From positions 186,001-250,000 of the IMG/VR virus record IMGVR_UViG_3300020178_000002: DNA of 64,000 nt, one strand, 5' to 3'. The notes under the pieces are model-generated. The model did not search any database and was not told the origin of the DNA. It saw only the letters and a list, made by a program, of their open reading frames with translations. A program made the translations under genes and the position numbers. Each line of letters starts with the position of its first letter. The stretch's first letter is position 1. Positions 42,144 to 46,330 of this stretch are shown here, one piece after another.

Positions 42144-42611
42144 CTAAGAGAAATAATCAAATACCTTGAGGATGAGTTGCTTTAATTTCAAGAAGCCACC
42201 AAAGATAGACTTAAAAATAGTCTGCAAGAAAATAACTACAACAGCTAAAGTAGCAATAGCTAACATAGTAATCTCAGGCAAGTAGTATCCTATTGCAACT
42301 AAGTCAAAGTCAGAGAGTGGAGCTGCTACTTTGGTTTTATGGCTATCTAAAATATATTCAATCTGATTTACAGGGTTTGAACCAGCTTTGGCTTTAACCA
42401 TTTTAAGATACTTTTTAAAACCAGAAGATCGAGTGACTGATGGGAAGTGCTTAAGGATATTCTTCTTTCCTGCACTATGAAATACATCTGAGACTCTTTC
42501 TTTAATCCTCACAAACTTTTTAAAGTGTTTTGAAGTGATTAAATCTATCTCAAGCATTGCCACCTTGTCCTCAAGGATAGCGATTTTCTCTGATGCTGTT
42601 AAGATCTTCAT
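42144..42611 (-). CDS. membrane-anchored protein with LTASEKIAILE leader (paralog B)
   Basis: Start MKILTASEK at 42611; C-terminal TM helix. Confidence 0.7.
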   Translation of the reverse strand: MKILTASEKIAILEDKVAMLEIDLITSKHFKKFVRIKERVSDVFHSAGKKNILKHFPSVTRSSGFKKYLKMVKAKAGSNPVNQIEYILDSHKTKVAAPLSDFDLVAIGYYLPEITMLAIATLAVVVIFLQTIFKSIFGGFLKLKQLILKVFDYFS

Positions 42612-42612
42612 G

Positions 42613-43167
42613 TTAGCTTCCAGACTTGCCCATGAACCAGCCAACAATAAATGTCACTAAACTCATCCAGAAAGCAGTTCCAATTGAGACATCAAAGAAA
42701 GCTTCTTTGTTTTGAGAACCTAGCTTCTTAATACCTGTCACATTAAGCACCCATACAACAATAGAACCTACAAGAAGGCAAGCAACAATAAGAATCTCTG
42801 GGTTTAAAATAAACTCCATCAAGTCAAAGCTTACACGATTCATTGAAGCCATTCTTCTCTGAGCGTTATTTCTCTCTTCAAGAATAAACTTAACTTGCTT
42901 TACAGGATTAGAACCTACTTCCTTACGAAGTGCAGCTAAAGCTTTTTTAAACTCAGGTGTCTTTGAAACACGACCATACTCTTTTGCAACTCTTTTTGGA
43001 CCGCCTGCTTTCTTGAAAACTTGACCTACTTTACTTTGAACACCTTTGAAAGCTTGAAGGCCTTCTGAAACCTGTTGTCTCATTTCATCAAGAATGGCTT
43101 GCTTTTCAAGTTGAGCAACTCTGTTCTCAAGAATTGCAATTTTCTCTGATGCCGTTAAATGTCTCAT
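42613..43167 (-). CDS. membrane-anchored protein with LTASEKIAILE leader (paralog A)
   Basis: MRHLTASEKIAILENRVAQLEKQA; shares the GSNPV.Q..(F/Y)IL core with paralog B; two C-terminal TM helices. Confidence 0.75.
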   Translation of the reverse strand: MRHLTASEKIAILENRVAQLEKQAILDEMRQQVSEGLQAFKGVQSKVGQVFKKAGGPKRVAKEYGRVSKTPEFKKALAALRKEVGSNPVKQVKFILEERNNAQRRMASMNRVSFDLMEFILNPEILIVACLLVGSIVVWVLNVTGIKKLGSQNKEAFFDVSIGTAFWMSLVTFIVGWFMGKSGS

Positions 43168-43252: not shown

Positions 43253-43825
43253 ATGAGAGTTATTGTAGAGGGGTTGATTGGAGTAGGCAAAAGCACATTC
43301 ACAACGGAGTTTGCAAGAATACATAAGCTAAACCCAATGTATGAGTCTGTTGATGATAATCCTTTTCTCTCAAAGTTCTATTCAGACCCAGAGAGATGGG
43401 CTTACACTCTTCAAATGCATTTCCTCTACGACAGATACTCAAAGCACCTTCCAGAGAACATCATCTTAGACAGGTCTATCTGGGGTGACCTTTGCTTTGC
43501 AAACATACTAAGAGAAGATGGTACTCTGACAGAAGAAGAGTATGAGTCTTATTTGAGCCATTCAAAAGTTTTAACAAACCATGTCCCTAAAGTAGACTTG
43601 TGTATACACCTTGATGTACCTGTCTATAAAGCAATGGACAGGATTAGTAAAAGGGGGAGAGGTTTTGAGACTTCTATTTCAGAAGATTACTTGGTTAGGC
43701 TCAAGAAAGAAATAGACTCACTCCCCTCTTTCTTACCCTCTGACATTAAGTATGTTAAAATTGATTGGGAAGACATGAGCCTAGATGAAATATCTAGATA
43801 TATTTCAAATATAGATTTAAAATAA
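43253..43825 (+). CDS. deoxynucleoside kinase
   Basis: IVEGLIGVGKST P-loop, E.V..NPFL..FY.DP.RWA...Q, DRS, RI..RGR. Confidence 0.9.
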   Translation: MRVIVEGLIGVGKSTFTTEFARIHKLNPMYESVDDNPFLSKFYSDPERWAYTLQMHFLYDRYSKHLPENIILDRSIWGDLCFANILREDGTLTEEEYESYLSHSKVLTNHVPKVDLCIHLDVPVYKAMDRISKRGRGFETSISEDYLVRLKKEIDSLPSFLPSDIKYVKIDWEDMSLDEISRYISNIDLK

Positions 43826-45355
43826 GGATACTTGACCTTTCTCATCTAGCTTTAGTCTTTCTTCTTTATATATTTCGCAGCTATTTTCGTTTACTTGTTC
43901 CCTTAAGTTTGAAGGTGCTGATCTGCCTTTCCTCGTTGTATTCGCTTGTCTTCTTAGTGCTTCATCAGACCTTAAAGGTAAGGAATCCATAGTGTTAGGG
44001 GTTGCCCATATAGATTCCTCTATATCTACACCCCTCTCCTCAGCTTCAACTTGAACCTGTAGAGTAGGTGCGAAGGTCTCTTTGCCCTGCTCTAAGCGAC
44101 TCTTCATTCTTGAGATATAATGACGTAGGTTCTCACCCCTCTGTGAAGCTGGAGGAGTTGACCAATTCTCTCCATAAATCAACGAAGGCTCTTCTTGCAG
44201 TATCTGGAACAACTCCATTTCCAAGCATTCTGAGCTCATCCGTTCTATTATCAAAGGACTCGTACAGCTTGGTTGCACCCACCCTATTGGAAGCCCCATC
44301 AAGGTCTCTACCCACCTCGGGTTCAACTTCATTGCAGCGTCCTTGCCCATGCTCACACGATCTGCGAAGTTCAGAGAGTGTGACTCCCCCACCCCTTTCG
44401 CTTTCCTTCGACCCGTCATTGTCAGAGTTATCTCTTTGTGGTGTATTTCCTGCGTTGTTGGAGTTGGCCACCCATATAAAGGGATGCTCGCTTCCTTCTC
44501 TTGAGTCTCCTTCAGGAGATCCTGATATATCTCTATTGCGTGAGGGTTCACCTGCTCCCGTAGATTGCCTGGATGGGAGCGTCTTTTCCTCCCCCCTGCT
44601 CTTGCTAGTCTTCTCAATGCCTCGTCGCTCCTCTGGTCTAGATGATCGAGAGTATTGGGAGTCCCCCAGAGTGACTCTTGGAGGCTCCCATGAGTATTGG
44701 TCTCTTCCTCTTGAGGATGGGTATATAGAGCCACTTGTGTCTCGGTTTCGGTCAAGGAGTCCATTGACCCATTCCAAGCTTTCTCTTTCGGTACCTCTTT
44801 TAATACCAAGAATGAAGACTCGCTTCCTTCTATGTGGAGCACCGACTTCTCTCGCTGAGAATATACCTGCCGTTGCTTCGTAACCCACCCTCTCCAATTC
44901 TCTAAGAACATGGAGCAAAACCGATGTTCCTTTTGGATCTGACCAATCATCTGATTTGAGTTCTGCTGAGAGGATTCCTTCGACATTCTCAAGGAAAATA
45001 ACGGAAGGTTGAGATACTTTAACTCCTCTGATGATATGTGGGAAGAGGTGTCTTGGGTCTGAGTCTGCTTTTCTTTTTCCTGCTGAACTAAAGGGCTGAC
45101 AAGGGAAGCCTCCTGACAAGATATCCACTTTTCCACGAAAGATTTCCCAGTCGAGGGTTTTAAGATTCGACCAGATAGGTGCTGGCTCAATAAACCCTTT
45201 TTCCATCTTTGCAACCAAGTTGCAGATTGGGAAGCTTTCGATCTCCACATAAGTGATTGTTCTGACATCTCCGAGAGCTTTTTTAAGTCCGATGTCGATT
45301 CCCCCATAACCTGCACAGAGTGATAGGTGTTTAAGTTCTTTGGTACTATCCACAT
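43817..45355 (-). CDS. alternative-frame C5-methyltransferase beta subunit (motif IX plus TRD-like repeats)
   Basis: 512 aa open frame fully overlapping the MTase gene; contains LNPRWVETLMGLPIGW (motif IX-like) and four W-x-T-P modules; ATG 6 nt after AGGAG. Confidence 0.7.
   Translation of the reverse strand: MWIVPKNLNTYHSVQVMGESTSDLKKLSEMSEQSLMWRSKASQSATWLQRWKKGLLSQHLSGRILKPSTGKSFVEKWISCQEASLVSPLVQQEKEKQTQTQDTSSHISSEELKYLNLPLFSLRMSKESSQQNSNQMIGQIQKEHRFCSMFLENWRGWVTKQRQVYSQREKSVLHIEGSESSFLVLKEVPKEKAWNGSMDSLTETETQVALYTHPQEEETNTHGSLQESLWGTPNTLDHLDQRSDEALRRLARAGGRKRRSHPGNLREQVNPHAIEIYQDLLKETQEKEASIPLYGWPTPTTQEIHHKEITLTMTGRRKAKGVGESHSLNFADRVSMGKDAAMKLNPRWVETLMGLPIGWVQPSCTSPLIIERMSSECLEMELFQILQEEPSLIYGENWSTPPASQRGENLRHYISRMKSRLEQGKETFAPTLQVQVEAEERGVDIEESIWATPNTMDSLPLRSDEALRRQANTTRKGRSAPSNLREQVNENSCEIYKEERLKLDEKGQVSLF
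44133..45353 (-). CDS. DNA cytosine-5 methyltransferase, alpha subunit
   Basis: CAGYGG (I), GGFPCQPFS (IV), LENV (VI), PHRRKRVF (VIII), LGNGVVP (X); GTG start 8 nt after AGGAG. Confidence 0.9.
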   Translation of the reverse strand: MDSTKELKHLSLCAGYGGIDIGLKKALGDVRTITYVEIESFPICNLVAKMEKGFIEPAPIWSNLKTLDWEIFRGKVDILSGGFPCQPFSSAGKRKADSDPRHLFPHIIRGVKVSQPSVIFLENVEGILSAELKSDDWSDPKGTSVLLHVLRELERVGYEATAGIFSAREVGAPHRRKRVFILGIKRGTERESLEWVNGLLDRNRDTSGSIYPSSRGRDQYSWEPPRVTLGDSQYSRSSRPEERRGIEKTSKSRGEEKTLPSRQSTGAGEPSRNRDISGSPEGDSREGSEHPFIWVANSNNAGNTPQRDNSDNDGSKESERGGGVTLSELRRSCEHGQGRCNEVEPEVGRDLDGASNRVGATKLYESFDNRTDELRMLGNGVVPDTARRAFVDLWRELVNSSSFTEG

Positions 45356-45411
45356 TAATTTCTCCTATAATAACATGCTACACTTATATATTATACCTAA
45401 ACCCCCCAGAC

Positions 45412-45907: not shown

Positions 45908-46282
45908 CTAGCCATTCCATTCAAAATTAAAGAATGGGCTATGGAACATCCCTTTAACTTTCCATTCCAGAAGCCAGCTTTCGTCAAGCCTATCTGAATA
46001 TATTTTTATAGGCTCTTTGTTTTTAATAGCTCTAGCAAACTCATTTTTCTTGACATAGAGCTTCTCATTCTTAGTGACCCTAGTAGGTACACCCGTGCCT
46101 CCTAATGGTCTTAGAAGCAAGTTTGTTGTATTTGGGAAATAAACCCCATCCCCCATATTTTTTCTAAGGAATGTTCTAATGTGCTTGTACCTGAAGTACG
46201 CTTTGTTTTTATTCCCACCAAAGAAAAAAGCTTGCTTCTCTAATCTGGCAATACGACTTTCAAGGTTTGCGATGCTGTCCAT
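45908..46282 (-). CDS. hypothetical protein with LESRIARLEKQA leader
   Basis: GAGGAG RBS before ATG 46282. Confidence 0.7.
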   Translation of the reverse strand: MDSIANLESRIARLEKQAFFFGGNKNKAYFRYKHIRTFLRKNMGDGVYFPNTTNLLLRPLGGTGVPTRVTKNEKLYVKKNEFARAIKNKEPIKIYSDRLDESWLLEWKVKGMFHSPFFNFEWNG

Positions 46283-46330
46283 GATCTCTCCTCTTCTTTT
46301 ATTCAATAAGGAGATGCCATAAAGAGGTTA

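Follow-up and report, generated by a model that had tools for sequence, protein, structure and literature searches.

The stretch of DNA examined here (hereafter the window) is 64,000 nucleotides long and corresponds to positions 186,001 to 250,000 of IMG/VR record IMGVR_UViG_3300020178_000002. On its minus strand, two long open reading frames overlap at 43817..45355. The longer frame, which we call beta (43817..45355, 512 amino acids plus stop), contains a conserved N-terminal region, four W-x-T-P modules, a motif IX-like block, and a tail. The second frame, alpha (44133..45353, 406 amino acids plus stop, GTG start), is predicted to encode the large domain of a C5 DNA methyltransferase. The putative start codons overlap as ATGTG (45351..45355), with the ATG of beta at 45353-45355 and the GTG of alpha 2 nt downstream at 45351-45353, and ATGTGGATA is nearly invariant across the related viral loci. 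An AGGAG Shine-Dalgarno-like site (45362..45366), whose function is inferred from sequence, lies 6 nt before the ATG and 8 nt before the GTG.

An earlier note on this sequence described four W-x-T-P cassettes in the beta frame, two on either side of motif IX, with the first and last being duplicates, and this observation is confirmed. Translation of the beta frame gave an uninterrupted protein with W-x-T-P at residues 230 (WGTPNT, nt 44668), 296 (WPTPTT, nt 44470), 398 (WSTPPA, nt 44164), and 450 (WATPNT, nt 44008). RWVETLMGLPIGW is found at residues 347-359 (nt 44279-44317), placing two modules before the motif IX-like block and two after it, and the region given in the note (43860-44668) covers module 1 through module 4. 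Shuffling the protein produced 0.036 W-x-T-P motifs on average, and none of 20,000 shuffles reached four. Module 1 (44504..44668, beta residues 230-284, WGTPNT...NLREQV, termed A-type) and module 4 (43841..44008, beta residues 450-505, WATPNT...NLREQV) are identical at 33 of 55 residues (60%, E 1e-21). Module 2 (44342..44470, beta residues 296-338) and module 3 (44036..44164, beta residues 398-440, WSTPPASQRGE...LQVQVEAEE, termed B-type) show no pairwise similarity, although both link into the same repeat family once homologs are included. Module 3 begins 31 nt before the stop of alpha and lies beyond it from nt 44132 down, and module 4 is coded in beta only. Within the motif IX-like block (44270..44329, KLNPRWVETLMGLPIGWVQP), residues L344, E350, L352, M353, and G354 are invariant in 54 sequences.

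Alpha matched Pfam PF00145 (6.6e-37) and phrog_363 (1.5e-51) and has recognizable motifs I (LCAGYGG), IV (GFPCQPFS), VI (ENVEG), VIII (HRRKRVF), and X (LGNGVVP). An AlphaFold2 (AF2) model has pLDDT above 90 for residues 1-205 and 378-400, and a Foldseek search with this model matched M.HaeIII and M.HhaI (E 4e-12), consistent with a Rossmann-type large domain. The region 44739..45353 encodes alpha residues 1-205 (motifs I-VIII) over beta residues 1-205. It is followed by an alpha linker (44256..44738, residues 206-366) that overlaps beta modules 1 and 2 and motif IX, is kept open but free in sequence, and has a pLDDT of 29-50, with residues 227-377 predicted to be disordered. The motif X region (DELRMLGNGVVP and its helix) is found at 44136..44255. 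The middle of alpha therefore does not provide the target-recognizing region (TRD) and motif IX that would be expected on the same chain as the catalytic motifs, as both motif IX and the modules are in the other frame. No solved structure or Pfam family covers beta. A Pfam search returned nothing above noise (SPOC_AIPP2, E 0.012, below the cut-off), PDB sequence searches with beta alone and with a beta profile gave only chance hits, and Foldseek of the beta model against PDB gave no match at E ≤ 0.001. Beta folds poorly when modelled alone (mean pLDDT 57, with residues 1-140 low), and the model is too uncertain outside residues 141-175, 230-300, 341-360, and 461-505; only modules 1 (pLDDT 68-96) and 4 were modelled with confidence.

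To determine if both frames are coding, we compared the locus with its relatives; 1567 database proteins match beta at E ≤ 1e-5 and at least 589 viral stretches encode relatives. Both frames are open over 287-565 codons in 60 of 60 distinct viral loci, while the third frame has 10-36 stops, though it is important to note that these loci were collected with beta as the query, which favours loci with an intact beta frame. Permuting synonymous codons gave 6.8 expected stops in beta and, on permutation of beta, 14.3 in alpha over the whole shared span, against 0 observed, and none of 200 permutations for each of the 60 loci stayed open. Among pairs under 50% identical, alpha four-fold sites are 0.60-0.87 identical wherever beta is conserved and 0.35-0.37 where it is not, and beta four-fold sites are 0.56-0.80 identical over the catalytic domain and motif X of alpha and 0.33-0.41 over its linker, with a neutral expectation of 0.27 (0.26 for the beta-frame sites over the linker). 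In the dual-coded N-terminal region specifically, alpha-frame four-fold sites are 0.60-0.71 identical (0.35 in residues 81-120) against 0.27 expected, and the BLOSUM score in the beta frame is 325 against 127 after synonymous permutation of alpha. The part of beta beyond the stop of alpha has a dN/dS of 0.10 at a dS of 1.37 against its closest relative, and the alpha frame has 8 further stops in this tail. Across the family, the alpha frame has 4.7 stops per 100 codons in beta tails and 0 in shared spans.

The same layout was found in phage C75C1, Synechococcus phage Yong-M2-251, and Burkholderia phage phi1026b. The catalytic domain and the modules lie in different frames in 77 of 84 further loci, 80 of them from bacterial and archaeal assemblies. 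Three loci were typed as single or mixed frame, and one database protein (P0027) switches frames. In three relatives (L116, L143, and L154) motif X lies in the beta frame, and in these alpha stops 8-25 codons after motif VIII.

We next modelled alpha and beta as a complex, which scored 0.82 against a best control of 0.00 (3 controls); this mark was reached by 58 of 80 solved complexes and 2 of 110 mismatched pairs. The runs agreed in at least 47% of contacts and the pLDDT of the partner was at least 59. In the model, the conserved N-terminal region of beta contacts alpha, alpha residues 374/377 touch beta residue 349, and of module 1 only residues 229-238 and 265 touch alpha. The model supports binding of alpha to beta, but it used row-paired alignments of overlapping genes, where shared nucleotides can mimic co-variation (for example alpha 38/39 with beta 36), and the interface ranges on the two chains are partly in register. 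Most of the best pairs, however, are more than 25 residues out of register.

The earlier note interpreted the cassettes as the serial TRDs of a multispecific, modular methylase, by comparison with Bacillus phage enzymes, and this interpretation is only partly supported. The modules are real repeats that occupy the position of the TRD, since in the single-chain relative Mycobacterium phage DillTech15 gp66, four 'LLPTPxAxDG' units lie between motifs VIII and IX of one ordinary chain. Of 591 modules from 180 homologs, 531 form one homology cluster, and the number of modules ranges from 0 to 10. Among six relatives that are 72-97% identical, the scaffold is conserved while the cassettes before motif IX, including module 2, are replaced, added, or lost, and one relative has an extra duplicated module in the tail, so "modular" fits. 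"Multispecific", on the other hand, rests on analogy only, and tblastn of beta against 50,697 phage records matched only phage C75C1, and no Bacillus phage methylase, at E ≤ 1e-5. The cassette turnover is compatible with each unit conferring its own target sequence but does not show it. The note also suggested that the second frame could let specificity cassettes be added without rebuilding the catalytic chain, which is half right. The part of alpha overlapping the cassettes is free in sequence and the tail modules lie beyond its stop, but every cassette placed before motif X must keep the alpha frame free of stops.

Taken together, we propose that the region is the recognition part of the second chain of a two-chain cytosine-5 DNA methyltransferase whose chains are read from one mRNA in two overlapping frames, a reading to which we assign a probability of roughly 0.8. 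In this view, ribosomes bound at one Shine-Dalgarno site would start either at the ATG (beta) or at the GTG 2 nt later (alpha). Alpha would fold into the large catalytic domain and then run through about 160 residues of disordered linker, kept free of stops only so that translation reaches the motif X helix, which would fold back onto the large domain. Beta would supply what alpha lacks, with conserved N-terminal segments wrapping the catalytic domain and holding the chains together, modules taking the place of the TRD, and a motif IX block packing against the motif X helix of alpha. The modules, homologous units of about 35-65 residues (W-x-T-P ... L-x-x-Q-V), would be exchanged, duplicated, and lost by recombination, changing what the enzyme recognizes. 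Our analysis shows that both frames are coding and under selection, that the layout is conserved, that the modules sit in the TRD position, and that cassettes turn over. That two separate polypeptides are made, assemble, and are both required for methylation, that both start codons are used, and that the modules determine specificity (which rests on position and turnover only) are inferred from sequence and structure models, and the idea that several modules are active at once remains tentative and, in our view, less likely than not.

A competing view of the modules, which we consider a real possibility though slightly short of even odds, is that they are repeats of one DNA-binding or TRD region that together give a single recognition sequence, or loose, non-specific DNA affinity, with module number tuning affinity or reach, not the number of specificities. 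Nearly all modules belong to one homology cluster, unlike a set of unrelated TRDs, and 110 of 180 homologs have exactly one A-type module, which suggests a single core unit; the confident modelling of only modules 1 and 4 in beta alone and the few module 1 residues touching alpha also agree with this view. However, cassettes of different subtypes replace each other at sharp boundaries among the 72-97% identical relatives, a pattern typical of specificity switching. In addition, 58 of 180 homologs have no A-type module at the threshold used, and the A-type module can sit before or after motif IX, which fits independently docking units.

It is also conceivable that a single canonical methylase is made by two programmed ribosomal frameshifts, +1 after motif VIII and -1 after motif IX, with the long open frames being incidental. 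The order and spacing of motifs I-VIII (alpha), modules plus IX (beta), and X (alpha) match DillTech15 gp66, and phrog_1008 matches beta 79-362 and then alpha 367-398 in profile order. We consider this very unlikely, as a search for -1 slippery heptamers (X_XXY_YYZ) between motifs IX and X found none in 46 of 46 loci, and in most loci only 26 nt separate beta 'LMGLP' from alpha 'GNG', so that conserved beta 'GW' and alpha 'RVDRLRLL' use the same nucleotides and one frameshifted chain cannot carry both. The N-terminal region of beta and the linker of alpha would not need to be open, yet both always are, the former is constrained at the amino acid level, the beta tail is under purifying selection, and alpha closes early exactly where motif X has moved to beta. 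An untranslated beta frame, with openness and similarity as by-products of the conservation and composition of alpha, is refuted. Alternative frames of conserved genes do show some similarity, and beta still scores 127 after synonymous permutation of alpha, but the observed score is 325 and 0 of 12,000 permutations stay open. Four-fold sites of Ala, Gly, Pro, and Thr codons cannot create beta-frame stops, yet four-fold sites (pooled with Val) are 0.6-0.7 identical, the only recognizable modules and motif IX are in beta, and the tail has the low dN/dS given above.

Our literature searches for a description of this family returned nothing relevant. If the two-chain reading is right, this is one of the longest same-strand overlaps under selection in both frames in any prokaryotic virus, at about 400-560 codons, and it would be present in well over a thousand genes from jumbo phages, marine phages, cyanophages, Burkholderia phages, and prophages of many phyla. 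Gene callers keep only one frame, so the recognition chain is either unannotated or stored as an unnamed, Pfam-less protein, and alpha is routinely annotated as a complete methylase although it lacks any recognition domain. The family would offer a system for studying how two proteins evolve in one sequence, with the disordered linker of one frame absorbing the constraints of the other, and how the choice between two overlapping start codons sets subunit ratios. The cassette turnover suggests a route by which phages retarget anti-restriction methylation. It is possible, though we regard it as unlikely, that several cassettes of a string can dock in turn on the one catalytic chain, in which case a phage could protect its DNA against several restriction systems and change targets by cassette shuffling without touching the catalytic residues. 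Naturally split methylases with portable recognition cassettes are also of practical interest for targeted methylation tools, a use already explored with M.EcoHK31I.

The closest known enzymes are M.EcoHK31I and M.AquI. M.EcoHK31I (E. coli HK31, YGGCCR) is a natural two-chain C5-MTase with its beta chain encoded in another frame inside the alpha gene, where both chains are needed for activity and the N-terminal part of beta is needed for association (PMC2836561, PMC3404938). The window gene likewise has a second frame within the gene of the first, motifs I-VIII and X in alpha, and motif IX in beta. In M.EcoHK31I the predicted TRD is assigned to alpha and beta is a small chain embedded within the alpha gene. 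In the window gene the TRD-position modules are in beta, the middle of alpha is sequence-free and predicted to be disordered, and beta, which is inferred to start at the same ribosome-binding site as alpha, overlaps the whole catalytic domain with a conserved N-terminal region and extends beyond the alpha stop. The multispecific Bacillus phage C5-MTases (SPR, H2) and M.phiBssHII (cited through the reference list of PMC8936443) have serial short recognition units between motifs VIII and IX, and TRD-sized units in series are also present here. Those enzymes are single chains. Their TRDs each have a demonstrated specificity, while the units here are homologous repeats marked by W-x-T-P, with a role in specificity that is only inferred. 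Single-chain actinophage enzymes such as DillTech15 gp66 have a homologous catalytic domain, the four 'LLPTPxAxDG' units, a motif IX 'FPEWMMGWPAGW', and a motif X 'RIIGNGVCP' in the same order, but everything is in one frame with no second long ORF on that strand. M.AquI (CYCGRG) is split in the variable region into two polypeptides (PMC3404938), with motifs IX and X both on the small chain. In the window gene, motif X stays on alpha and is reached through a long open linker, whereas L116, L143, and L154 have exactly the M.AquI split, with alpha ending just after motif VIII and beta carrying the modules plus motifs IX and X.

On the minus strand, two long ORFs overlap almost completely. The first, alpha (44133..45353, 406 aa, GTG start), is a C5 cytosine DNA methyltransferase by profile search, matching Pfam PF00145 at 6.6e-37 and phrog_363 at 1.5e-51, with motifs I-VIII in residues 8-190 and motif X (RMLGNGVVP) near residue 380. 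Between them lies a stretch rich in G, E, R, S, D and N that looks like no TRD. The second, beta (43817..45355, 512 aa), has an ATG start 2 nt upstream of alpha's GTG and returned no Pfam family, though it matches phrog_1008 "DNA methyltransferase" over residues 79-362, and alpha 367-398 matches the end of the same profile. An AGGAG is found at 45362-45366 and a TATAAT hexamer at 45390-45395, about 35 nt upstream of the shared start codons, both on the minus strand. The window lies in a 312-kb virus record with terminal repeats, that is, a jumbo phage.

An earlier note had described repeated W-x-T-P, TRD-like cassettes in the beta frame at 43860-44668, and this observation is correct. Beta carries W-x-T-P at residues 230, 296, 398 and 450, and RWVETLMGLPIGW at residues 347-359. 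Four W.TP compare with 0.036 expected when the protein is shuffled, and none of 20,000 shuffles reaches four. Modules 1 and 4 are 60% identical over 55 residues (E 1e-21).

To examine whether the two-frame layout is conserved, we scanned viral contigs with beta and found at least 589 stretches encoding relatives, while a word search of protein databases found 1567 proteins at E <= 1e-5, almost all unnamed and without a Pfam domain. In 60 distinct viral loci both frames are open for the whole gene (287-565 codons), whereas the third frame has 10-36 stops, and the start is almost invariably ATGTGGATA. Permuting synonymous codons of one frame gives 6.8 expected stops in beta and 14.3 in alpha, and none of 12,000 permutations stays open. 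A 271-aa antisense ORF (44068-44883, plus strand) also lies inside the dual-coded region, but antisense frames of homologs carry 3-28 stops, so it is most likely a by-product of the constrained codon choice. One database protein, P0027 (307 aa, ENA metagenome), switches from the beta frame to alpha and back to beta, and is the only close hit with a Pfam PF00145 call; it is probably an assembly indel artefact, but it could be a natural frame-switched variant.

Third-base identity at four-fold sites was then compared among pairs under 50% identical, where the neutral expectation is 0.27. In the alpha frame, identity is 0.60-0.71 over residues 1-80, 0.62-0.69 over 121-200 and 0.65-0.87 over 201-360, all constrained by beta, but near neutral over residues 81-120 (0.35) and 361-400 (0.37). 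In the beta frame, identity is 0.56-0.80 over residues 1-200 and 0.74 over 361-400, both constrained by alpha, and near neutral over 201-360 (0.33-0.41). It follows that both proteins are constrained over the catalytic domain, that only beta is constrained over the modules and motif IX while alpha is merely kept open, and that alpha is constrained over motif X. Since Ala, Gly, Pro and Thr codons cannot create beta-frame stops, the constraint on alpha's wobble positions is selection on beta's amino acids and not only avoidance of stops. Against its closest relative, the beta tail beyond alpha's stop has dN/dS 0.10 at dS 1.37. In such tails the alpha frame has 4.7 stops per 100 codons, eight of them in the window's own tail, even though the tail holds the same kind of module. 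In two viral loci, L011 (2001-5204) and L075 (2001-4232), the beta frame runs on for 1067 and 762 codons, far beyond alpha's stop, into sequence unrelated to the modules, and these may be fusions of beta to other domains.

The same layout occurs in three named phages. In phage C75C1, alpha is annotated as DNA methyltransferase and beta is not annotated; the layout is also found in Synechococcus phage Yong-M2-251 and in Burkholderia phage phi1026b. In phi1026b (locus L084, 290-1855) the beta frame continues without a stop into the annotated ParB-like partition protein gene (gp69), making a beta-ParB fusion protein possible, and a Mom-like modification gene lies just upstream. A scan of bacterial and archaeal assemblies found 153 relatives in many phyla, and HMM typing showed the catalytic domain and the modules or motif IX in different frames in 77 of 84 loci, always with alpha = beta + 2. 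One two-frame gene of this family (locus L112) sits on a contig binned to an archaeon, a Thermoplasmatota MAG, though it could be a viral contig or a binning error. Three states exist. In the window type, alpha carries motifs I-VIII, the linker and motif X, and beta carries the N region, the modules and motif IX. In an M.AquI-like type, seen in the loci L116, L143 and L154, motif X lies in the beta frame and the alpha frame closes 8-25 codons after motif VIII, showing that alpha's long linker is kept open only where it must reach motif X. The third state is the ordinary single chain, such as Mycobacterium phage DillTech15 gp66, which has four LLPTP units between motifs VIII and IX.

A double frameshift could in principle rebuild a canonical single chain from the two frames, but several observations argue against it. 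None of 46 loci has a -1 slippery heptamer between motifs IX and X, and in most loci only 26 nt separate beta's LMGLP from alpha's GNG, meaning the conserved beta "GW" and alpha "RVDRLRLL" are read from the same nucleotides. A frameshift model would not need beta's N region or alpha's linker to be open, yet both are, and it would not explain the selected beta tail.

Structure models agree with two chains, though that two polypeptides are made and assemble is inferred, whereas conservation of and selection on both frames are shown by the sequence comparisons. Modelled alone, alpha has a confident large domain (residues 1-205) and motif X helix (378-400), with residues 227-377 disordered, and it matches M.HaeIII and M.HhaI over about 180 columns, the large domain only. 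Beta alone is confident only in a helix at 151-175, in modules 1 and 4, and in motif IX. For the pair, the model supports binding but does not show it: the score is 0.82 against a best control of 0.00 (3 controls), a mark that was reached by 58 of 80 solved complexes and 2 of 110 mismatched pairs, with the runs agreeing in at least 47% of contacts and a partner pLDDT of at least 59. It is important to note that the alignment rows come from overlapping genes, so shared nucleotides could mimic co-variation for residues in register, but most of the top pairs are far out of register. The best contacts put beta residues 2-7 (the invariant MWIxPK) on alpha 43-62, and beta 349 (motif IX) on alpha 374/377 (the motif X helix), the latter being what a canonical fold would need.

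Of 591 W.TP segments from 180 homologs, 531 fall into one homology cluster, so they form a single repeat family with subtypes. The window carries three kinds: A-type (WATPNTMD...RKGR...NLREQV), B-type (W[SP]TPxASQRGE...LQVxVEA) and one unclassed module (module 2). Module number ranges from 0 to 10 per protein, with 0-8 before motif IX and 0-5 after it. One beta homolog, the 796-aa protein P0008, has nine W.TP modules and two nearly identical copies of the motif IX block (KGKLNPRWVETLMGLPVGWVMPSC). The A-type module is present in 122 of 180 homologs; it lies only before motif IX in 101, only after it in 13, and on both sides in 7, including the window. Six relatives that are 72-97% identical share the scaffold but differ in cassette content between "HGSLQESLW" and "KLNPRWVE", and the closest viral locus has a different cassette in place of module 1 and an extra duplicated B-type module in the tail. 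This pattern fits exchangeable recognition cassettes, but does not distinguish one active cassette per enzyme from several. The earlier note's reading of a modular and multispecific methylase is partly supported: the modular part fits, while multispecificity remains a hypothesis.

What is present is a full-length two-frame methylase gene of a widespread type. Only two two-chain C5-MTases, M.AquI and M.EcoHK31I, are named in the literature searched (PMC3404938). The window gene is inferred to work like M.EcoHK31I, but differs in that the putative recognition modules are on beta, beta shares alpha's start site, beta overlaps the whole catalytic domain with a conserved N region that contacts alpha in the complex model, and beta extends past alpha's stop. 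Our literature searches found no description of this family, although papers outside those searched cannot be excluded. Serial TRDs and TRDs at separated locations are known from the Bacillus phage enzymes and M.phiBssHII (titles cited in PMC8936443), and our sequence search found no relationship to those enzymes.

The genes surrounding the methylase were also noted. Two adjacent small ORFs on the minus strand (42144-42647 and 42613-43167) are paralogs (33% identity, E 5e-21) that share an N-terminal LTASEKIAILExxVAxLE motif and a hydrophobic C-terminal segment. A third small ORF (45908-46306, minus strand), just upstream of the methylase gene at higher window coordinates, has a similar IANLESRIARLEKQA start, and none of the three has a Pfam family. 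On the plus strand, a deoxynucleoside kinase gene (43253-43825; Pfam dNK, 3.1e-38) converges on the methylase gene, and its last 9 nt overlap the end of the beta ORF (43817-43825).
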